Assembly (NCBI GenBank): GCA_001179505.1
Contig: CDMY01000345.1
Coordinates: forward strand, 1-64,000
Reading direction: 5' to 3'
Source: Vitrella brassicaformis CCMP3155
Taxonomy: Eukaryota > Protista > Chromerida
DNA: 64,000 bases
Below, piece by piece: positions 27,262-55,437 of the stretch. Below the pieces are notes generated by a model. It worked only from the letters and a program-made list of their open reading frames with translations, was not told where the DNA came from and searched no databases. Positions within the stretch are counted from its first letter, which is position 1. The number at the start of each line of letters is the position of its first letter. The translations under genes and the position numbers were made by a program.

Positions 27262-30249
27262 GAATCAATAAGCAGAGAATCCCACAGCTCACTGACAGTT
27301 CATCTCGTCGCTCTCTCCCCGCTGTGTGTGCACGTTGCTTCAAACAGGCTGTTTCGTCCCATCCCTGACAGAATGACGGTCCGCTGCATGCCTCCCCGAG
27401 TCCATCTTGTCGCCTTCTCTCGCCTCATCTCTATGGCGTTGCTGCTTCTGCCGCTGAACACGACGCAGACTGCCGCTGCCATCGGCAGCGACAGAGCGGC
27501 GAGTGGGCTCCAGCTGATGCGCATGCGTCCGCACAGAGGGAGGGGAGGCCCTCTAGAAGCCTTCCTGCCAAGTGTGCCGAGGGAGATGCCCCTGAGGGGC
27601 TTTGGGATGCGTCGAGATGAGTCTGTGAGGGCCATCCATGCCGGCAAGAGCCGAGAGGTGAGCTGACTGGACAGATCGACGGGGATCCACGCCATTCGTA
27701 CGAACGATTCCTTCTCTGTGCTTCTGCCTGTGTGTGTTTCGTTCAGCTGCGCCATCCATCCACTCCTTCTCCATCCCTGGGCACAATCAACAGAATGCGG
27801 CCTTCAGCTGCAACAGCCAGGTACATGAATGCACACAGACGGACAGGCAGATGGGATGCCGTCCATATGTGTGTGGCTTTCAGATGGCCGTCCATGCGGC
27901 GTCACACAGCGCTGCTCTCTGCCGTCGCCACACAGGCGGAAACGGCCGGCGATTCATCGGAGGCAGTCGGCAAGCCATCGCTGGAAGGTGGGCACACGTT
28001 CATCTCCCCATTGCCGACCACGCAGCAAGACTCATCGTGTGTGGTTCGTCTGCAGGTCGCGTGGAGCTGACAGTGGATGATCTGTTGCCCACGGCTGACG
28101 TGCCGCTCCCTCGAGTGGACTTGACGACAGAGCCTGAGGTGTTCATTGGGAGCGATTATATGGACAAGGCCTATTCGCTGCTGCTGCGCGAGTACGGGAG
28201 GTATGACGATTCGAGCGCGCGAGTGATGCCAATGTCATTCGTCGGCTTCCAAGGGGCTGGCAAGACCAGGATGCTGAAAGAGCTGTCTAAGAAGCTGCGA
28301 CAGGAAGGCATCCCCGCCATCTTTATCCCTTTTGGTGACGAGACCGAGTACAACATAGACACCGAAGGCGCCTCTACGCCGTTGTTCGACTCACTCAATC
28401 TGCGGCTGGCGTGGGCGGCGGCGACCGACGAGGCGCGAGCAAGGGTCGCACGGGCAGCCAATGTGGATGTCGACAAGCTGAACTTTACGATGTGGCTCAG
28501 GCACGCATTCATCAGCGAGCGCACCGCTCGTGAGTGGCTTGACTATCACCCGTGTCTGCTGCTTATCGACGATCTTCACCGCTTTGCGACTCTGCAGGGC
28601 GACGAACGCTATGAAGCGGAGGGCAAAGTGGGCAGATACCTCAAGTGCAATTTCCTTAATCGTCGTGACCGGCATTTCGTCTTCGCTGAGCCCAACAATG
28701 CGACCACTGTCAGCGGCGATTTTCTCTCCTTCCTCGATCCAATGTTCCGGAAGTGGCGTGACCTGCTCCGACCAGAGCTGCCTTTGATCGAGGGAAAAGG
28801 ATCTGGAGCACCTTCTGGACAGCAATGTGACTCGTGGGACGATTTGCTGGGCCGGGCGATCTCCTGGACTGGTATGGGAGATGTGTCAACACGGTGGCTC
28901 TCTGGAGGCCAAAGTCGGCAACGTCAGTTGTGTCGATCCACGGAGAAGATTTGGAGCGATTGGGGTATTATGCGATTTTCTGGCTACGGCGATGGAAGGG
29001 ACCAGCGGCTCTTTTGGGCCTAATATCGGCAACTGGACGGCATTGCTGAATGTGTTTGACGAAGTGAGGACTTCTCAGATTTGGCATGGACGACTGGCGT
29101 GGCACAGAACATACTCACTGCCTCCTTGCTATCTGGCCGGTATGTGCGCTTCTCTGGCGCAATGGGACTCTCTCAAGGAGAAAGCTGGCGAGTCGTTTTG
29201 TGAGGGCCTGAATGCTGTTGCCAGCAGCCTGCGGATGCTCAATCATGCTGAGGAGGGACGCCAGTGGGTCGGGCCGTGTACAGCGGCGATGCTCATACGA
29301 TTGCTGCAAGGCGAAATAGAGAGGCTGACCCGATGGAGCCTCCGCCCCCGCGAAGCTAACGAGGTCCCACCGCAGGTCGGCAATGTGCTTCCCGGCTCTC
29401 TCGTGATACCGTTGAGCGGGGACACACAGTCGATGGGCTGCAAATTTGGCAGGTACTTGAGCTCGGAGTGGAGAAACACTGAGGATGTCATTAAGGCGTT
29501 TGTCCGAAGGAGCGGACCTCCCTCTGAAAGATCCAGATGGGATCCTGACACCGTCTTCTTCTATCAGCCCAAGCCTGATGCCTTCGAGGACAAATATGAC
29601 TTTCTTGTCTTCGTGGTGGACAAGGATGGCAAGCTGAGCGATGTGTGGGGCTACAAGTGTGTCCGCGGCGACGCCTTACCGCCAGGAGAGGACGAGCCTT
29701 TTATCGACTATGAAGATCGCCGGCAGCAGTGGATGGAAACCAATGTGTGGCCGCCTCTGCCGGGCAATCCGCTGCCGGGCGCGGCCGATCTCTTCAGTGA
29801 TCCCGATATGCGGTCGATGGAGATCAAGTCAGTGTGGCTGCGAGGGGGTGGGGGGCGGGGAGAGAAGGCATTTGTGAGGAGGCAGGAGGATGGCCATGCG
29901 TGGATTGTGCCATGTCGAGACGATGTTGATGCACTACTCGGTCTGACACTGAACAGAACCTGTTCCTTTGTACGTTCGAGTGCTTGAGGCATGTGTGTTG
30001 TGTAAGGGGATGTAGATGGACATTTGGGTGTAGACCGGTTGTGTTGTCATTTGTAGTCAAGACGGAGACTTTTCATGTGTGAGAATGTAGACGTGAGACG
30101 CCTGGATGAGAGGATGAATCGTGTTCCTCCAAATCGATAGATCTCACATCAAGGTCACCTGCTGGAGCCAATGCAACTGCAAATGCGCCTTCCCTTCGCC
30201 TCCCTCGAGGAGGAGCGATCCCGCTCAAGCTCGCGAGTGAAGAACAAGG
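27262..30249 (+). repeat. Left arm of a ~3 kb inverted duplication (partner ~36300-39520)
   Basis: Colinear reverse-complement similarity covering the whole NTPase-REase gene, its 3' flank and the ~170 bp upstream of the PPR-TGM ATG. Confidence 0.9.
27373..29987 (+). pseudogene. Crinkler/RHS-like NTPase-REase paralog CR1 (signal+transit-like leader; +1 frameshift at ~28793)
   Basis: Walker A GFQGAGKT, Walker B LLLIDDL, C-terminal FFYQP..KYDFLVFV..VWGYKC. Three leader exons precede GRVELTVDD. Extra G (GAGGGAAAAGG versus GAGGAAAAGG in paralogs); a sequencing error cannot be excluded. Confidence 0.75.
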
Positions 30250-36864: not shown

Positions 36865-39408
36865 TCAAGCACTCGAACGTACAAAGGAACAGGTTCTGTT
36901 CAGTGCCAGACCGAGTAGTGCATCAACATCGTCTCGAGATGGCACAATCCACGCATGGCCGTCCTCCTGCCTCCTCACAAATGCCTTCTCTCCCCGCCCC
37001 CCACCCCCTCGCAGCCACACTGACTTGATCTCCATCGACCGCATATCGGGATCACTGAAGAGATCGGCCGCGCCCGGCAGCGGATTGCCCGGCAGAGGCG
37101 GCCACACATTGGTTTCCATCCACTGCTGCCGGCGATCTTTATAGTCGATAAAAGGCTCGTCCTCTCCTGGCGGTAAGGCGTCGCCGCGGACACACTTGTA
37201 GCCCCACACATCGCTCAGCTTGCCATCCTTGCCCACCACGAACAGAAAAAAGTCATACTCATCGTTGAAGGCATCAGGCTCAGGCTGATAGAAGAAGACA
37301 GTTCGAGGATCCCATGTAGATCTTTCAGAGGGAGGTCCGCTCCTTTCGACAAACGCCTTGACGACATCCTCAGTGTTTCTCCACTCCGAGCCGAAGTACC
37401 CGCCAAATTTGCAGCCCGTCGACTGTGTGTCCCCGCTCAACGGTATCACGAGAGAGCCGGGAAGCACATTGCCGACCTGCGGTGGGACCTCGTTAGCTTC
37501 GCGGGGGCGGAGGCTCCATCGGGTCAGCCTCTCTATTTCGCCTTGCAGCAATCGTATGAGCATCGCCGCTGTACACGGCCCGACCCACTGGCGTCCCTCC
37601 TNNNNNNNNNNNNNNNNNNNNNNNNNNNNNNNNNNNNNNNNNNNNNNNNNNNNNNNNNNNNNNNNNNNNNNNNNNNNNNNNNNNNNNNNNNNNNNNNNNN
37701 NNNNNNNNNNNNNNNNNNNNNNNNNNNNNNNNNNNNNNNNNNNNNNNNNNNNNNNNNNNNNNNNNNNNNNNNNNNNNNNNNNNNNNNNNNNNNNNNNNNN
37801 NNNNNNNNNNNNNNNNNNNNNNNNNNNNNNNNNNNNNNNNNNNNNNNNNNNNNNNNNNNNNNNNNNNNNNNNNNNNNNNNNNNNNNNNNNNNNNNNNNNN
37901 NCCAGGAGATCGCCCGGCCCAGCAAATCGTCCCACGAGTCACATTGCTGTCCAGAAGGTGCTCCAGATCCTTTTCCTCGATCAAAGGCAGCTCTGGCCGG
38001 AGCAGGTCACGCCACTTCCGGAACATTGGATCGAGGAAGGAGAGAAAATCGCCGCTGACAGTGGTCGCATTGTTGGGCTCAGTGAAGACGAAATGCCGGT
38101 CACAACGATGAAGGAAATCGTACTTGAGGTATCCACCCACTTTGGCATCCGCTTTAGAGCGTTCGTCGCCCTGCAGAGTTGCAAAGCGGTGAAGATCGTC
38201 GATGAGCAGCACACATGGCTGACGGTCCAGCCACTCACGCGCAGTGCGCTCGCTAATGGATGCGTGCCTGAGCCACATCGTAAAGTTCAGCTTGTCCACG
38301 TCCACATTGGCTGCCCGTGCGACCCTTGCTTGCGCCTCGTCGGTCGCCGCCGCCCACGCCAGCCGCAGATTGAGTGAGTCGAACAACGGCGTAGAGGCGC
38401 CTTCGGTGTCTATGTTGTACTCGGTCTCGTCACCAAAAGAGATAAAGACAGCGGGGATGCCTTCCTGTCGCAGCTTTTTAGACAGCTCTTTCAGCATCAG
38501 GGTCTTGCCAGCGCCTTGGAAGCCGACGAGTGACATTGGCATCACTCGCGCGCTCGAATCGTCATACCTCCCGTACTCGCGCAGCAGCAGCGAATAGGCC
38601 TTGTCCATATAATCGCTCCCAATGAACACCTCAGGCTCTGTCGTCAAGTCCACTCGAGGGAGTGGCACCTCAGCCGTGGGCAACAGATCATCCACTGTCA
38701 GCTCCACACGACCTGCAGACGAAAGTGACACACCAGACAAGATGAGTCTTCCTGCCTGGTCGTCAATGGGGAGATGAACGTGTGCCCACCTTCCAGCGAT
38801 GGCTTGCCGGCTGCCTCCGGTGAATCGCCGGCCGTTTCCGCCTGTGTGGCGACGGCAGAGAGCAGCGCTGTGCGACGTCGCATGGACGGCCATCTGAAAG
38901 CCACACACATATGGACGGCATCCCATCTGCCTGTCCGTCTGTGTGCATTCATCTACCTGGCTGTTGCAGCTGAAGGCCGCATTCTGTTGATTGGGCCCAG
39001 AGATGCAGAATGAGTGGATGGATGACGCAGCTGAACGAAACACACACACACAGGCAGAAGCACAGAGAAGGAATCGTTCATGCGAATGGCGTGGATGCCC
39101 GTCGATCTGTCCAGTCAGCTCACCTCTCGGCAAGTGCCGGCATGGATGGCCCTCACAGACTCATCTCGACGCATCCCAAAGCCCCTCAGGGGCATCTCCT
39201 TCGGCACACTTGGCAGGAAGGCTTCTAGAGGGCCTCCCCTCCCTCTGTGCGGACGCATGCGCATCAGCTGGAGCCCACTCGCCGCTCTGTCGCTGCCGAT
39301 GGCAGCGGCAGTCTGCGTCGTGTTCAGCGGCAGAAGCAGCAACGCCATAGAGATGAGGCGAGAGAAGGCGACAAGATGGACTCGGGGAGGCATGCAGCGG
39401 ACCGTCAT
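36865..39408 (-). CDS. Crinkler/RHS-like NTPase-REase paralog CR2 (signal+transit-like leader; spans an assembly gap)
   Basis: Same exon structure as CR1, GFQGAGKT, VLLIDDL, EYDFFLFV..VWGYKC. No lesion is visible outside the gap. Confidence 0.75.
37602..37901. other. Assembly gap (300 N) inside CR2
   Basis: Run of n; the equivalent stretch in CR1 is about 380 bp, so the gap size is nominal. Confidence 1.
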
Positions 39409-42111: not shown

Positions 42112-44721
42112 ATGATGGTCCGCTGCATGCCTCCCCGAGTCCATCTTGTCGCCTTCTCTCGCCTCATCTGTATGGCGTTGCTGCTTCTGCCGCTGAACAC
42201 AACGCAGGCGGCCACTGCCATCGGCAGCAACAGAGCGGCGAGTGGGCTCCAGCTGATGCGCATGCGTCCGCACAGAGGGAGGGGAGGCCCTCTAGAAGCC
42301 TTCCTGCCAAGTGTGCCGAAGGAGATGCCCCTGAGGGGCTTTGGGATGCGTCGAGATGAGTCTGTGAGGGCCATCCATGCCGGCAAGAGCCGAGAGGTGA
42401 GCTGACTGGACAGATCGACGGGGATCCACGCCATTCGAATGGTTCCTTCTCATTCAGCTGCGCCATCCATCCACTGCTTCTCCATCCCTGGGCCCAATCA
42501 ACAGAATGCGGCCTTCAGCTGCAACAGCCAGGTAGATGAATGCACACAGACGGACAGGCAGATGGGATGCCGTCCATGTGTGTGTGGCTTTCAGATGGCC
42601 GCCCATGCGGCGTCACACAGCGCTGCTCTCTGCCGTCGCCACACAGGCGGAAACGGCCGGCGATTCATCGGAGGCAGCCGGCAAGCTATCGCTGGAAGGT
42701 GGGCGAACATTCACTCACGCAAAGTTGACATAGGCAGAGACAGTCATCTTGTCTGTGTTATCACTTTTCGTCTGCAGGTCGCTTGAAGCTGACAGAGGAT
42801 GATCTGTTGCCCACGGCTGACGTGCCGCTGCCTCGAGTGGACTTGACGACAGAGCCTGAGGTGTTCATTGGGAGCGATTATGTGGACAAGGCTTATTCGC
42901 TGCTGCTGCCCGAGTACGGGAGGATGGACTCGTCGAGCGAGCGAGTGATGCCAATGTCATTCGTCGGCTTCCAAGGGGGTGGCAAGACCAGGATGCTGAA
43001 AGAGCTGTCTAAGAAGCTGCGACAGGAGAGCATCCCCGCTATCTTTATCCCTTTTGGTGACGAGACCGAGTACAACATAGACACCGAAGGCGCCTCTACG
43101 CCGTTGTTCGACTCACTCAATCTGCGGCTGGCGTGGGCGGCGGCGACCGACGAGGCGCGAGCACGGGTCGCACGGGCAGCCAATGTGGACGTGGACAAGC
43201 TGAACTTTACGATGTGGCTCAGGCACGCATCCATCAGCGAGCGCACCGCGCGTGAGTGGCTCGACCGTCAGCCATGTGTGCTGCTCATTGACGACCTGCA
43301 CCGCTTTGCGACTCTGGAGGGCGGCGAACGCTCTGAAGCCGAGGGCGAAGTGGGTGAATACCTCAAGTACGATTTCCTCAATAATTCTGACCGGCACTTC
43401 GTCTTCACTGAGCCCAACAATGCGACCACTGTCAGCCGCAAGTTTCTTCGGTTCCTCGATCCAATGTTCCAAAAGTGGCGTCACCTGCTCCGGCCAGAGC
43501 TGCCTTTGATCGAGGAAAAGGACCTCAAACACTTTCTGAACAATAATGTGACTCGTGGAACGATTTGCTGGGCCGGGCGATCTCCTGGACTAGTGTGGGA
43601 GATGCGTCAGCACGGTGGCTCTCTGGAGGCCAAAGTCGGTAACGTCTCTCGTGTCGATCGGAGAAGATTTGGAGCGATTGGGGTATTATGCGATTTTCTG
43701 GCTACGGCGATGGAAGGGACCAGCCGCTCTTCTGAGCCTAATATCGGCAACTGGACGGCATTGTTGAATGTGTTTGACGAAGTGAGGACTTCTCATATTG
43801 GGCATGGACGACTGGCGTGGCACAGAACATACTCACTGCCTCCTTGCTATCTGGCCGGTATGTGCGCTTCTCTGGCGCAATGGGACGCTTTGAAGGAGAA
43901 AGCTGGCGAGTCGTTTTGTGAAGGACTGAATGCTGTTGCCAGCAGCCTGCACATGCTCAATCATGCTGAGGAGGGACGCCAGTGGGTCGGGCCGTGTGCA
44001 ACGGCGGTGCTCATACGATTGCTGCAAGGCGAAATAGCGAAGCTAACCCACTATGGCCCCCGCGATGCTGACGAGGTCCCACCGCAGGTCGGCAACGTCC
44101 TTCTCGGTTCTCTCGTGATACCGTTGAATTACGACAAAGAGGCGATGGGCTGCAAATTATATATATATTCTTTTTGGCGGGTACTTCAGTAGCTCGGAGT
44201 GGAGAAACACTGAGGAAGTCATTAAGGCGTTTGTCGAGAGGAGCGCACCTCCATGCTCTGCACGATTCGAATGGGATCCTGACACCGTCTTCTTCTATCA
44301 GCCTGAGCCCGATGCCTTCGAGGGTATCTATGACTTTTTTGTGTTCGTGGTGGACAACGATGGCAAGCTGACCGATGTGTGGGGCTACAAGTGTGTCCGC
44401 GAAGACGTCTTACCACCAGGAGAGGACGAGCCTTTTATCGACTATAAAGATCGCCGGCAGCAATGGATGGAAACCAATGTGTGGCCGCCTCTGGCCGGGG
44501 ATCCGCTGCCGGGCGCGGCCGACCTCTTCAGTGATCCCGATATGCGGTCGATAGAGATCAAGTCAGTGTGGCTGCCAGGGGGTGGGGGGCGGGGAGAGAA
44601 GGCATTTGTGAGGAGGCAGGAGGATGGCCATGCGTGAATTGTGCCATCTCGGGACGATGTTGATGCACTACTCGGTCTGGCACTGAACCGCACATGCTCC
44701 TCTGTGCGTTGCAGTGCTTGA
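42112..44721 (+). pseudogene. Crinkler/RHS-like NTPase-REase paralog CR3, C-terminal domain disrupted
   Basis: Intact leader and NTPase (GFQGGGKT). 16-bp AT-rich insertion at ~44159-44174 causes a frameshift, and TGG>TGA creates a nonsense codon at 44635-44637. Confidence 0.8.
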
Positions 44722-46713: not shown

Positions 46714-47856
46714 ATGTCTGCTGCTGCGTGTGTGTTTGCCCTTCTCCTCGCATGCCCTGCCTCCCTCGTGAGCGTGTCAGCTCAGGACCTCAGTGCCGTC
46801 CAGCAGAACTATAAAGGGGCCTTCGATGGCAAAGTAAGCACAGATCTGGCTCATCATGGGCAACCGCAACCAACACGCGGCACAAGAGATGCACGCACTG
46901 GTATGTGCTTCCTTTCATCAGCTGCAGTTTGGCTCTTCCCCCTGCCTGCTTGTGGTCGACCTCGTCAACGCATACCTGTAACTTGCACTCTCTCTCTTCC
47001 CCTCTCTCGGTGTCACTCACTCCCCGTCTGCCTGTCTGTCTGTCTGTTTACGTCCGTGCAGTCGAGAGGGTTCGCCTTTGTATGCGGCAGAGGGCGGCAA
47101 ACAGGCCCTAGCAGGCACAGAGCGGCTGCTGACATCGGCCAGGCAGCTGGGCATCCCCGTCGTCTTCACGGCCGTCAAGTACGCCAAGAAGGCAAACGGC
47201 AAAGACGCTGGCGTCTGGTGGCGCAAGGTGCCCGCACTATCGGCTTTCGTCGAAGGACAGGTGGGCACACACACACACGCATTTCTTATTAGATGGATAC
47301 CAGATTAGATACCAGATTAGATGGACACGACCACGATTGTCCTATTTAGAGTAGATGTGAGCTTTCTTTTTGAATGCGTGTGTGCAGGAGCTGGCCGAGT
47401 TCCCGCCCTCCCTCACTCCGCTGCCGAGTGAGGTCGTGTTGACCAAGCAGTACGCCTCGAGCTACTTCGGGACGTCGCTGGCCAGCATGCTCACCGCCAT
47501 GAAGGTCGACACGGTCGTCATCGCAGGCGTCAGCACCTCTGGATGGTCAGTCAGCCAGCCAGGCGGGCAGGCAGCCGACATGGCTCAGACAGACCAAGCT
47601 TGCACCCCTCCCTCTGTGTCGGTCTATGTGTCTTTGTAGCATCCGTGCGACAGCGCTCGACACTCTTCAGAGCGGCTTTGTTCCAGTGGTGGTGCGTGAT
47701 GCGGTCGGCGACCGGCGCCCAGAGGTGCACGAGGCCAATCTGTTCGACATACAGGCCAAGTACGGGGAGGTTCGCATGGCTGATCAAGTGCTGGCGTACT
47801 TCGAACAGGTGGCCGGCACCAAGAAGGCGCCGCCCACACGAGCAGAGGAGCTGTGA
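46714..47856 (+). CDS. Isochorismatase-family cysteine amidohydrolase (N-carbamoylsarcosine/maleamate amidase-like) with signal peptide
   Basis: Triad LLVVD, VLTKQYASSYFGT, GVSTSG|CIRATALD (Cys codon formed across an intron), VVRDAVGDR, ANLFDIQAKYGEV; ends AEEL*. Confidence 0.88.
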
Positions 47857-48355: not shown

Positions 48356-50448
48356 CTACACCTGCATGCCTGAAGCACTCGAACGGACAAGTGAGCATGT
48401 ACGGTTAAGCGCCACGCCAAGTAAGGCATCAACATCGTCCCGAGATGGCAGAATCCACGCATGGCCATCCTCCTGCCTCCTCACAAATGCCTTCTCTCCC
48501 CGCCCCCCACCCCCTCGCAGCCACACTGACTTGATCTCCATCGACCGCATATCGGGATCGCTGAAGAGGTCGGCCGCGCCCGGCAGCGGGTTGCCGACTA
48601 GAGGCGGCCATACCTCAGTTTCCATCCACTGCTGCCGGCGATCTTTATAGTCGATGAAGGGCTCGTCCTTTCCTGGCGGTAAGGCGTCGCCGCGGACACA
48701 CTTGTAGCCCCACACATCGCTCAGCTTGCCATCGTTCTCCACCACGAAGACAAGAAAGTCATATTTGTCCTCGAAGGCTGCATCAGGCTCAGGCTGATAG
48801 AAGAAGACAGTTCGAGGATCCCATATGGATCCTTCAGAGGGAGATTCGCTCCTATCGACAAACGCCTTGACGACATCTTCAGTGCTTCTCCACTCCGAGC
48901 TGAAGTACCCGCCAAATTTGCAGCCCATCTGCTGTTTGTCGTATTTCACCGGTATCACGAGAGAACGGGGAAGAACGTTGCCGACCTGCGGTGGGACCTC
49001 GTCAGCATCGCGGGGGCCATGGTGGGTCAGCCTCTCTATTTCGCCTTGCAGCAATCGTAGGAGCACCGCCGCTGCACACGGTCCGACCCACTGGCGTCCC
49101 TCCTCAGCATGATTGAGCATCCGCAGGCTGCTGGCAACAGCATTCAGCCCCTCACAAAACGACTCGCCAGCTTCCTCCTTCAAAGCGTCCCATTGCGCCA
49201 GCCTCGTGCACATACCGGCCAGATAGCAAGGAGGCACTAAGTATGTTCTCTGCCGCGTCAGTCGTCCTGGCCGTTTATATGAGGTCCTTTCTTCGTCAAA
49301 CACATTCAAGAGTGCCGTCCAGTTGCCGATGTCAGGAACTGACCAGCCGAAGGTCGCTTCTCCTTCCATAGCCGTAGCCAGAAAATCGCATAATACCTCA
49401 ATCGCTCCAAATATAATCGATGGATTGACACGAGAGACGTTGCCGACTTTGGCCTCCAGAGAGCCACCGTGCTGACGCATTTCCCACACTAGTCCAGGAG
49501 ATCGCCCGGCCCAGCAAATCGTTCCACGAGTCACATTGCTGTCCAGAAGGTGCTCCAGATCCTTTTCCTCGATCAAAGGCAGCTCTGGCCGAAGCAGGTC
49601 ACGCCACTTCCGGAACATTGGATCGAGGAAGGAAAGAAAATCGCCGCTGACAGTGGTCGCATTGTTGCGCTCAGTAAAGACGAAGTGCCGGTCACGACGA
49701 TTAAGGAAATTGCACTTGAGGTATTCACCCACTTCGCCCTCGGCTTTACAGCGCTCGCCGCCCTCCAGAGTCGCAAAGCGGTGAAGATCGTCGATAAGCA
49801 GCAGACACGAACGATAGCCAAGCCACTCACGCGCGGTGCGTTTGCTGATGGATGCGTGCCTGAGCCACATCGTAAAGTTCAGCTTGTCGACGTCCACATT
49901 GGCTGCCCGTGCGACCCTTGCTCGCGCCTCGTCGGTCGCCGCCGCCCACGCCAGCCGCAGATTGAGTGAGTCGAACAACGGCGTAGAGGCGCCTTCGGTG
50001 TCTAAGTGATACTCGGTCTCGTCACCAAAAGAGATGAAGATGGCGGGGATGCCCTCATGCCGCAGCTTCTTGGACAGCTCTTTCAGCATCCTGGTCTTGC
50101 CAGCCCCTTGGAAGCCGACAAATGACATTGGCATCACTCGCGAGCTCGACGAGTCCATCCTCCCGTACTCGCGCAGCAGCAGCGAATAGGCCTTCTCGAC
50201 ATAGTCGCTCCCAATGAACACCTCAGGCTCTGTCGTCAAGTCCACTCGAGGGAGCGGCACGTCAGCAGTGGGCAACAGATCATCCACTGTCAGCTCCACG
50301 CGACCTGCAGACGAAAGTGACACACCAGACAAGATGAATCTGCTGCCTGGTCGTCAATGGGGAGATGAACGTGTCACGAACCGTCTGCTTCTTGTGGCCT
50401 TTTGTGTGCCTGCTGGTCTTGTGTCTCGAACTCCTGTGGCCTCTTCAT
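48356..50448 (-). CDS. Crinkler/RHS-like NTPase-REase paralog CR4 (intact; short basic header exon)
   Basis: Uninterrupted ORF 48356-50332. Upstream exon ATG 50448 encodes MKRPQEFETQDQQAHKRPQEAD-G, with a phase-1 GT donor at 50381 joining GRVELTVDD. Confidence 0.8.
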
Positions 50449-50675
50449 GGCTGTCACGGGATGTGCTTCCGCGATGAATCAAACCGCGCGGCGAGATGAA
50501 AAGCGATGAACCTGCAGAAAGGAAGTGCGAGCTTCTCTATTAGCTCGCCGAGGGAAGGGGGCCTGAGTGAACGGGGATGGTTCGGTTTCGTGCTTAGCGG
50601 CTGATACCAGTGAGAAGCTTGAACAGAAATACCGTTCGTGGTGGATAGATCACTCCCACTCATCCATCTGTCGGC

Positions 50676-54755: not shown

Positions 54756-55437
54756 TGGAGGGAGGGGCGGGCAGAGGGGAGAGATACAGGCAGACAGACA
54801 GACAGAGAGGCATCTTGGTAGCTGTGACCAGCGGGGCCGAGGAGGGCGGAGAGAGAGCCTGTGTGTATGGTAGATCTAGCCCATTGATTTGATTGCAGAA
54901 ACACTTGCATGGCATGGAATATCTACTTTGTGTGTGCGAGTGTCTATGAGGGTGACTCTCCATCGCTCGGCGTTTCGGCTGGCCGGCCGCCGATTGACAG
55001 ATGCGATGCGATGCAGATCAGGGACTTTTACAGACAGACCGACCTCAAACCCTCTCAGTGAATGCAGTCATCTGACCCACCACTTCCCCGACGACGCCCT
55101 CCTGTGGGTCAGATGGGCTCTCGAGGGCAATTTACGTGGCCCGCGTCGCCCACTCAGCCCCCCGGCCTTGCCAGAGGCATCATAGGTGTGCATCTGACAC
55201 CCGATATCACTGCAAATGACGGCGGGAGAAACTCAAGCTCGCAAATGGATCAGGGAGAGACGGCGAAAATCTGTAGACGCTGTCTGCGTCTGCCGTCTGT
55301 TGACATCCGTTGAGCCTAATCCGATCGCAATCAGTCGATGTTCGTCGATTCGAGATTGTCGAGACACCGTGTCTTCCGCGTCGTCCACCCCTTCCACCAT
55401 TCGGAGCGTTGATTGGAGGTACTTACGTTGAGTGAGA

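Follow-up and report, generated by a model that had tools for sequence, protein, structure and literature searches.

Most discussion of Crinkler-type NTPase–nuclease modules treats them as toxins that pathogens send into the nuclei of their hosts. Vitrella brassicaformis is a phototrophic alga; to our knowledge, it is not known as a pathogen and has no known host or target. Here we analyse CR4, a gene of V. brassicaformis CCMP3155 that lies in the first 64 kb (64,000 nucleotides (nt), hereafter referred to as the window) of the 109,775-base pair (bp) contig CDMY01000345.1, together with its paralogs. In CR4, a core comprising a P-loop NTPase and a probable nuclease-like domain is preceded by a short first exon, whereas neighbouring copies of the core are preceded by a long leader, and the two arrangements part at the 5′ end of a conserved phase-1 intron. 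We propose, with a probability of about 0.6, that the family core begins right after this intron and that the part upstream of it is an exchangeable address module in a Crinkler-related NTPase–nuclease family. Judged from the gene structures of the Vitrella paralogs, header exchange is more general than one copy and involves two putative address classes. A sequence-only reading of the window had proposed one effector core sent to two addresses by exon shuffling; the header exchange at the intron and the two classes stand, but 'effector' is overstated, as CR4 lacks a Crinkler header and the alga is not known as a pathogen.

The content of Zhang et al. (2016) on Crinkler (CR) proteins is taken here from a review (PMC5289972). 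Like these proteins, whose C-terminal module comprises NTPase, helix–turn–helix and restriction endonuclease (REase), CR4 has a P-loop NTPase, and the domain that comes after it is probably of the restriction-endonuclease fold. Moreover, the Pfam Crinkler N-terminal domain (PF20147) occurs upstream of the same core in 2 of 50 CR4 relatives, scoring 29.6 bits against a cut-off of 24.6 in P0094 (Nitzschia), and the exchange of the N-terminal part at a fixed junction is comparable to the recombination-prone HVLVVVP boundary of oomycete Crinklers (CRNs). A nuclear destination is likewise typical of CRNs, the Crinkler proteins localized so far being nuclear (PMC5289972). By contrast, CR4 has neither a Ubl nor a Crinkler header (LxLFLAK...HVLVVVP) but 22 disordered residues only, the Vitrella junction is a conserved-phase intron rather than a protein motif, the nuclease Q-x-K motif reads K-x-V in the local cluster, and its Walker B motif has DD rather than DE. 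The host also differs, being a phototrophic alga with no known target organism. Furthermore, the CR4 paralogs have leaders with a hydrophobic signal and a transit-like part, whereas CR headers hardly ever contain hydrophobic secretion-like regions, one Angomonas case apart (PMC5289972). As the core is shared, the Crinkler header is missing and such leaders are nearly unknown in the class, the Vitrella arrangement is a variant rather than a plain Crinkler member.

Two further systems offer parallels. N-terminal targeting-exon exchange likewise joins the same core to a different first exon or exons across a boundary in an intron, with all modules ending in phase 1; the Vitrella case differs in that it recurs within one expanded family and concerns a probable DNA-directed enzyme whose localization is predicted only. 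The leaders of the paralogs also recall the bipartite targeting sequences of red-alga-derived complex plastids, in that a hydrophobic stretch precedes an [AS]F[LM]x motif and a region rich in Arg and poor in acidic residues. Complex-plastid targeting uses a signal peptide and a transit peptide with F, Y, W or L at position +1 (PMC8233740), whereas the AFL of copies A, B and C (see below) and of P0008 lies 30–40 residues past the hydrophobic stretch, not at the likely cleavage site. CR4 has none of these leader features.

CR4 occupies positions 50448 to 48356 on the minus strand, and exact spliced mapping showed that its exon model is identical to the public protein P0001 (671 amino acids (aa)); a search with the CR4 core retrieved P0001 at 100% identity, with gene coordinates 48356–50448 of CDMY01000345.1. 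Coding exon 1 (50382 to 50448, 67 nt) holds 22 codons and one base of a Gly codon, ends in phase 1 and encodes MKRPQEFETQDQQAHKRPQEAD. It is followed by a 77-nt phase-1 intron (50305 to 50381) and an unbroken core exon (48356 to 50304) of 648 codons plus the stop, which encodes the P-loop NTPase, a helical region and the C-terminal domain. On the minus strand, the sequence runs ATG (50448)...GAC G (50382), GTTCGTG (50381–50375), ACACGTTCATCTCCCC...CAG (50305) and GT (50304), with the donor G/GTTCGT and the acceptor CAG/GT at 50305/50304. Upstream, the frame is closed by a TGA 33 nt before the ATG, and unspliced reading leads to a TGA two codons past the donor. Exon 1 contains two KRPQE units that lie 14 residues apart (AAGAGGCCACAGGAG and AAAAGGCCACAAGAA), and it may have grown from a shorter basic exon by a partial 42-nt duplication.

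A tblastn search with the CR4 core identified four core copies in the window: copy A (28058–29999, plus strand; core exon beginning at 28056), copy B (38710–36853, minus; core beginning at 38712, with 300 N inside), copy C (42780–44718, plus; core beginning at 42778) and CR4 itself (50302–48359, minus). MAFFT and BLASTN alignments revealed 88–92% identity between CR4 and A, B and C from just before the stop codon, through the entire core exon and into the intron, ending at 50374. Upstream of 50374, pairwise BLASTN and MAFFT found zero similarity between CR4 and these copies, and ~800 bp upstream of the core exon are common to A, B and C. The intron sequence ACACGTTCATCTCCCC, directly after GTTCGTG in CR4, recurs unchanged in A and B and in diverged form in C. 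The breakpoint at 50374 was placed independently by contigs derived from copy A in two public DNA runs, which fit CR4 up to 50374, where they leave loose ends, and then continue as copy A exon 3 sequence. Because the non-shared part of the intron is GTTCGTG (50381–50375) only, which is specific to CR4 and CR5 (described below), and 50374–50305 is common to A, B and C, the break may lie anywhere from the exon end to intron base +7. Two claims of the earlier reading, that similarity ends a few bases into the intron and that the header differs from the paralog leader from the 5′ end of the phase-1 intron onward, were thus borne out. CR4 and CR5 have cores ~90% identical to those of the A/B/C copies and the opposite module; we propose a recombination event, whether unequal exchange or gene conversion, with one of its limits inside these first 7 nt.

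At the other end of the shared block, the similarity of CR4 to the other four copies stops 10–17 nt before the CR4 stop codon (48365–48373). Copies A and B have a stop codon five codons earlier (after VRSSA), and C and CR5 remain similar to each other for ~280 nt further. In CR4, the shared block and the reading frame thus end at the same place on the 3′ side.

The leaders of A, B and C each comprise three exons. That of copy A (27373 to 27987, plus) consists of exons 27373–27657 (phase 0), 27747–27820 (phase 2) and 27884–27987 (phase 1); that of copy B (38790 to 39408, minus) of exons 39408–39124, 39030–38957 and 38893–38790; and that of copy C (42112 to 42698, plus) of exons 42112–42396, 42458–42531 and 42595–42698. 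From its first ATG, the copy A leader reads MTVRCMPPRVHLVAFSRLISMALLLLPL..., in which a hydrophobic stretch in exon 1 (LISMALLLLPL) is followed by an Arg-rich, acid-poor region of ~115 residues. RNA evidence was drawn from assembled contigs of two runs whose type is uncertain and which behave as RNA (RNA-type), alongside two DNA runs. One RNA-type contig joins copy A exon 3 straight to the core without the intron, its loose end at 50306 being the reverse complement of ...ATCGGAGGCAGTCGGCAAGCCATCGCTGGA, and the leader-type N terminus is therefore spliced as predicted. A blastp comparison (E 1.6e-8) shows homology between the copy A leader and the leader of the paralog P0008, and the exon phases 0 and 2 agree in the two. 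For P0008, P0005 and P0003, the annotation seems to place the start too far downstream (L011:3893–4000 and window positions 27373–27432 and 42112–42171, respectively), and an in-frame upstream ATG adds a hydrophobic signal-like segment to each. In addition, the P0008 gene is split into two annotated genes (402 and 323 aa), with the core continuing at L011:5612–6580 in another frame. For annotation, this means that several Vitrella models in the NTPase–nuclease family begin at the wrong ATG or are split in two.

The CR4 header recurs in a fifth copy on the same contig, CR5 (82472–84572 of CDMY01000345.1, 34 kb from CR4), whose protein P0002 starts MKAMKRPQESEPQDQLAHKRPQEAG-GRVELTVDD. CR4 and CR5 are alike from 50488, 40 nt 5′ of the ATG, to the core end, with identities of 35/40 in the 5′ flank, 62/68 in exon 1, 63/67 plus a 10-nt gap in the intron and ~90% in the core; both KRPQE units and the GT donor are unchanged. 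The flank (50449 to 50488, minus), delimited by BLASTN and MAFFT, marks the 5′ end of the block duplicated in the short-header lineage. The presence of the same exon in CR5 indicates that the short exon is older than the CR4/CR5 split, yet it is without special constraint. Three degenerate telomere-like units (TTAGGGTTTAGGGTGTAGGGTTT) lie at L001:9895–9930, ~50 nt upstream of the start of the CR5/CR4 similarity. A 124-bp stretch upstream of CR5 (L001:9677–9800) is 87.5% identical to window positions 54946–55068, 4.5 kb beyond CR4; the two stretches may belong to a small dispersed repeat that lies close to each of the short-header copies.

An exhaustive HMMER search returned 177 relatives. Nearly all of the closest ones that were looked up are additional Vitrella paralogs of far greater divergence; a Chromera sequence is among the more distant relatives, as are sequences from the diatoms Seminavis, Mayamaea and Nitzschia. 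In Vitrella, the NTPase–nuclease family has expanded to at least ~15 divergent paralogs, and its headers separate cleanly into two classes by hydrophobicity, length and motifs. Short headers have 13–25 hydrophilic residues with 4–5 K/R and are found in CR4, CR5, P0006 (MSEAAQSKKRKLD), P0016 (MDSAQAPEPKRLKRDAQP) and P0162 (MADQNEGPPMKRQKAAETLIARA), with first exons of 67, 76 (with an extra upstream ATG), 40, 55 and 70 nt, respectively. Leader-class headers (A/B/C, P0008, P0153, P0010, P0160 and P0015) have 54–154 residues, are rich in Arg and contain a hydrophobic stretch (Kyte–Doolittle 1.3–3.0 over 12 residues) and an [AS]F[LM]x motif. When annotated proteins were mapped onto genomic loci, a phase-1 intron was present at the header/core boundary in all ten gene models mapped (CR4, CR5, A/B/C, P0006, P0016, P0162, P0010, P0160, P0153 and P0008). 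This intron lies 9–21 residues before the conserved DL of (V/I)E(L/I)T(V/I)xDL, and all other intron positions vary among the paralogs. The short-header spliced model of P0162 is identical to the open reading frame (ORF) of an MMETSP transcript, and the leader-type model of P0160 translates from a JGI transcript contig. The shared boundary structure makes the CR4 mini-exon one case of an established family gene structure rather than an oddity: what had been called a new phase-1 exon is indeed a 67-nt phase-1 exon in the public model, but it is not new, being the same in CR5 and having equivalents in P0006, P0016 and P0162.

These structures suggest that two old modules circulate in the family. 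One would be the 54–154-aa leader, whose hydrophobic signal-like stretch, [AS]F[LM]x motif and Arg-rich tail resemble an endoplasmic reticulum (ER) or complex-plastid targeting sequence, and the other a single first exon of 40–70 nt encoding a putatively disordered, hydrophilic peptide with a basic cluster. Many distant relatives of diatom type (P0043, P0049, P0072, P0084, P0134 and others) have an N-terminal extension of 90–230 aa in which (F/Y)xF..L.DGATYxL recurs immediately before the core, which Pfam does not recognize and which may be another header domain of the class.

The two modules are old, and their phase-1 ends would let either of them splice to the core; each copy might hold both, with promoter or splicing choice producing dual targeting instead of a fixed swap. 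We consider this very improbable. The surroundings of A, B and C hold no copy or remnant of the short exon, and those of CR4, CR5, P0006, P0016 and P0162 hold no leader remnant; the last leader introns, at 68–161 nt, are too short for another exon. On the CR4 side, 228 bp only separate its ATG from that of the divergent Rad17-like gene (ATG 50676, plus), and the spacer between CR4 and this gene (50489 to 50675), which is not common with CR5, is presumably the promoter for both. With neither a hidden short exon close to the leader genes nor remains of a leader close to the short-header genes, alternative first exons are largely excluded.

We next compare headers and cores phylogenetically. A tree built from protein sequences of the NTPase region places the local cluster as sister to the pair of P0006 (short) and P0008 (leader); it unites P0016 (short) with P0160 and P0015 (leader), and P0058, which represents the P0162 cluster (short), with the clade of P0153 and P0010 (leader). 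The header distribution is therefore incongruent with the core phylogeny: the classes are interspersed in three well-supported clades, which requires several exchanges, and the core tree implies at least two to four header switches. Because the copy A leader is homologous to that of P0008, the leader is older than the local cluster, which favours replacement of the leader by the short exon, the direction given in the earlier reading. Read in this direction from the sequences, the leader was probably the older state in the local cluster and the short exon probably replaced it before the CR4/CR5 split. Alternatively, there may have been two old genes whose cores were homogenized by gene conversion up to the intron. 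The local trees count somewhat against the replacement history, in that the DNA tree of the five copies with a transcript outgroup is a star in which A and B only are joined, and in that a CR4 and CR5 clade is neither supported nor rejected (approximately unbiased (AU) test, p = 0.36), as is also the case for a single short-header origin.

The assembled sequence sets CR4 apart from the other local copies. It has no stop and no frameshift over 648 codons, whereas copy A is frameshifted near 28794–28798, copy C is frameshifted near 44173–44180 and has a stop at 44635, CR5 is also frameshifted, and copy B contains 300 N at 37602–37901, an assembly gap; the description of CR4 as the only demonstrably intact copy holds for this contig. 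Pairwise dN/dS values are 0.36–0.51 for pairs containing CR4 and 0.50–0.56 among A, B, C and CR5, which indicates moderate constraint as estimated from these alignments. RNA-type contigs match the CR4 core without mismatches at 48801–49020, 49137–49322 and 48764–48962, and within these three stretches CR4 differs from every other known copy at 25–54 positions. The CR4 core is therefore transcribed, at a word depth of ~5–9 compared with 48–63 for the neighbouring isochorismatase-family gene.

Several observations weigh against a working CR4 header and bear on the possibility that CR4 is a 5′-truncated duplicate stranded beside the promoter of the Rad17-like gene. Exon 1 would then be a fortuitous ORF of the gene predictor, the transcripts low-level read-through, and the protein would begin at an internal Met, the first in the core being residue 71. 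Neither RNA-type run has a contig over 50346–51800, including exon 1 and its junction (50346–50479), despite the core depth of ~5–9, and the DNA runs cover this interval continuously; RNA-type (Logan) contigs drop rare variants and cover 5′ ends poorly, however, and the gap is weak evidence against exon 1 and no refutation. No transcript-derived copy of the 671-aa protein or of exon 1 was found: in metagenome contigs, 62 pattern matches for P0001 yielded zero relatives, the exact 21-nt exon 1 pattern gave 0 matches, and the genome contig was the sole contig returned as encoding P0001. The T at +3 of the CR4 donor is absent from all 22 other mapped donors, and we estimate at ~27% the chance of an ATG before a stop in the required frame for one copy at the local base composition. 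In the comparison of CR4 with CR5, exon 1 (91%) shows no better conservation than the intron (94%), four of its five changed codons are non-synonymous, and CR5, the other short-header copy in the cluster, is itself frameshifted near L001:11227–11239. The altered Q-x-K motif of the entire local cluster would also suit a dead gene. Against this stand the retention of the same exon, donor and 40-nt flank in CR5, the equivalent basic phase-1 mini-exons at the same boundary in three other lineages, one of them transcript-confirmed, and the unbroken 648-codon frame that CR4 alone keeps, with dN/dS reported as below 0.5 (range 0.36–0.51). We therefore regard a truncated, non-functional CR4 as unlikely. 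The credibility of exon 1 comes from its recurrence in CR5 and three distant paralogs, not from CR4 by itself; we infer its use in CR4 from these comparisons and do not count it among the directly observed results.

If CR4 uses its short exon, loss of the leader is a firm consequence, and the protein, made without an ER or organelle leader, would remain in the nucleus–cytoplasm compartment. Whether the header also directs nuclear import is a separate matter, as the term NLS-like (resembling a nuclear localization signal (NLS)) did not survive: CR4 fails both classical patterns, with two KR dipeptides only and a net charge of about −1. A regular-expression scan found no monopartite K-K/R-x-K/R match in the CR4 or CR5 header, and the bipartite pattern (K/R)(K/R)-x10-12-(3 of 5 K/R) failed in both, KR-x12-KRPQE of CR4 reaching 2/5; both headers are net acidic, with 4–5 basic against 4–5 acidic residues. 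These results, together with the four non-synonymous changes among the five altered codons, would be expected if the exon were real but served as a donor of a start codon only, so that removal of the leader yields a cytosolic protein in which the KR pairs are incidental. Other observations point towards a signal. Both KRPQE units are unchanged between CR4 and CR5, and the homologous mini-exon of the cousins contains monopartite matches, KKRK in P0006, KRLK in P0016 and KRQK in P0162. The AlphaFold model of CR4 (mean pLDDT 83, pTM 0.86) predicts residues 1–20 (pLDDT 42–51) to be disordered without secondary structure, the chain being ordered from residue 21 and the core beginning at pLDDT >90, which places the header in an exposed, disordered segment as expected of an NLS. 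Basic clusters (at least 3 K/R in 5 residues, at most 20 residues upstream of the core) are enriched across the wider family, occurring in 10 of 35 non-redundant relatives, compared with 3.2 ± 1.7 in control windows (maximum 10 in 1000 draws). The localized Crinkler proteins, as noted above (PMC5289972), also favour a nuclear destination.

A further pointer comes from a transcribed paralog. The transcript-like contig L002 (JGI sample 3300017148, 1–2291) encodes a paralog 69% identical to CR4 that ends in a SAP domain (Pfam PF02037), a motif known from DNA-binding nuclear proteins. L002 continues past the CR4 stop into this domain, with its frame changing twice near 1343–1481, and no SAP-domain exon was found downstream of any copy in the window. 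On balance, a header that supplies a start codon and nothing more is a possibility that we take seriously but do not favour. Nuclear import through the basic residues is plausible for the short class by analogy with the cousins; for CR4 itself the case is weak, and we place this prediction somewhat below even odds.

A more far-reaching proposal is that Vitrella sends one Crinkler-derived NTPase–nuclease separately to the compartments that hold its DNA, with a plastid-type leader or a nuclear-type basic exon re-assorted at the conserved phase-1 intron to serve as the address; this is speculative and probably too strong. If it were true, the family would represent an internal, compartment-specific system of DNA surveillance or defence, or a selfish-element system, rather than secreted effectors. 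Under the proposed module exchange, a phototrophic alga carries the same kind of core as Crinklers with the usual header replaced by either of two seemingly ordinary intracellular address modules. Should localization agree, the family would be a clean natural case of retargeting through first-exon exchange, and this would argue for action of the modules inside the producing cell, on the DNA of particular compartments.

The core contains a Walker A motif (GFQGAGKT) and a Walker B motif (LLLIDD, with DE in the family). Pfam returned AAA hits only for the core, all below the gathering score, and no family for P0001 at E ≤ 0.001. A Foldseek search with the full model matched ORC/Cdc6, Apaf-1, NLRs, SAMD9 and Avs (E 9e-6 to 1e-3, probability 0.9–1.0). 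These STAND/AAA+ NTPases are the best matches of the CR4 model, and bacterial Avs proteins and SAMD9 likewise pair the NTPase with a nuclease-type effector domain. However, template modelling (TM) scores are low (0.15–0.25 on the query), identity is 9–15%, CR4 has no sensor repeats, and its nuclease-like domain is C-terminal. The C-terminal 200 residues carry the family motif P..A.F..YD...GYQxKEG, in which F and D are invariant. Folded alone, this domain gave weak structural matches (Z 2.0–3.2), mostly to restriction or related nucleases (Bse634I, PaqCI, McrC, Bax1, Can2, MspJI and NotI); Foldseek returned none for it at E ≤ 0.001, and sequence searches of the PDB with the core and with a C-terminal profile returned no meaningful hit. 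On these models, the CR4 core appears to be a STAND/AAA+-like NTPase with, probably, a restriction-endonuclease-fold C-terminal domain. All five local copies (A, B, C, CR4 and CR5) and L002 read WGYKCVRG (window 48690–48713, minus, in CR4) where the family has GYQxKEG, in which QxK is presumed to be the (E/Q)xK of the nuclease motif D...(D/E/Q)xK. This change of QxK to KxV in the local cluster makes nuclease activity doubtful, and catalysis may have been lost or altered there.

At the 3′ end of CR4, a high-depth RNA-type contig (47800–48485) derives from the convergent isochorismatase-family gene, which ends at 47856 on the plus strand. As this contig reaches 48485, the 3′ untranslated region (UTR) of that gene overlaps the last 130 nt of the CR4 coding exon in antisense. 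Finally, P0012 (MMETSP Transcript_34945, 90 aa) has the CR4-specific C terminus (AWILPSRDD...SLVRSSASGMQV) and, further upstream, A/B-like and L002-like residues; it represents either a chimera assembled from transcripts of paralogs or a further copy or allele.

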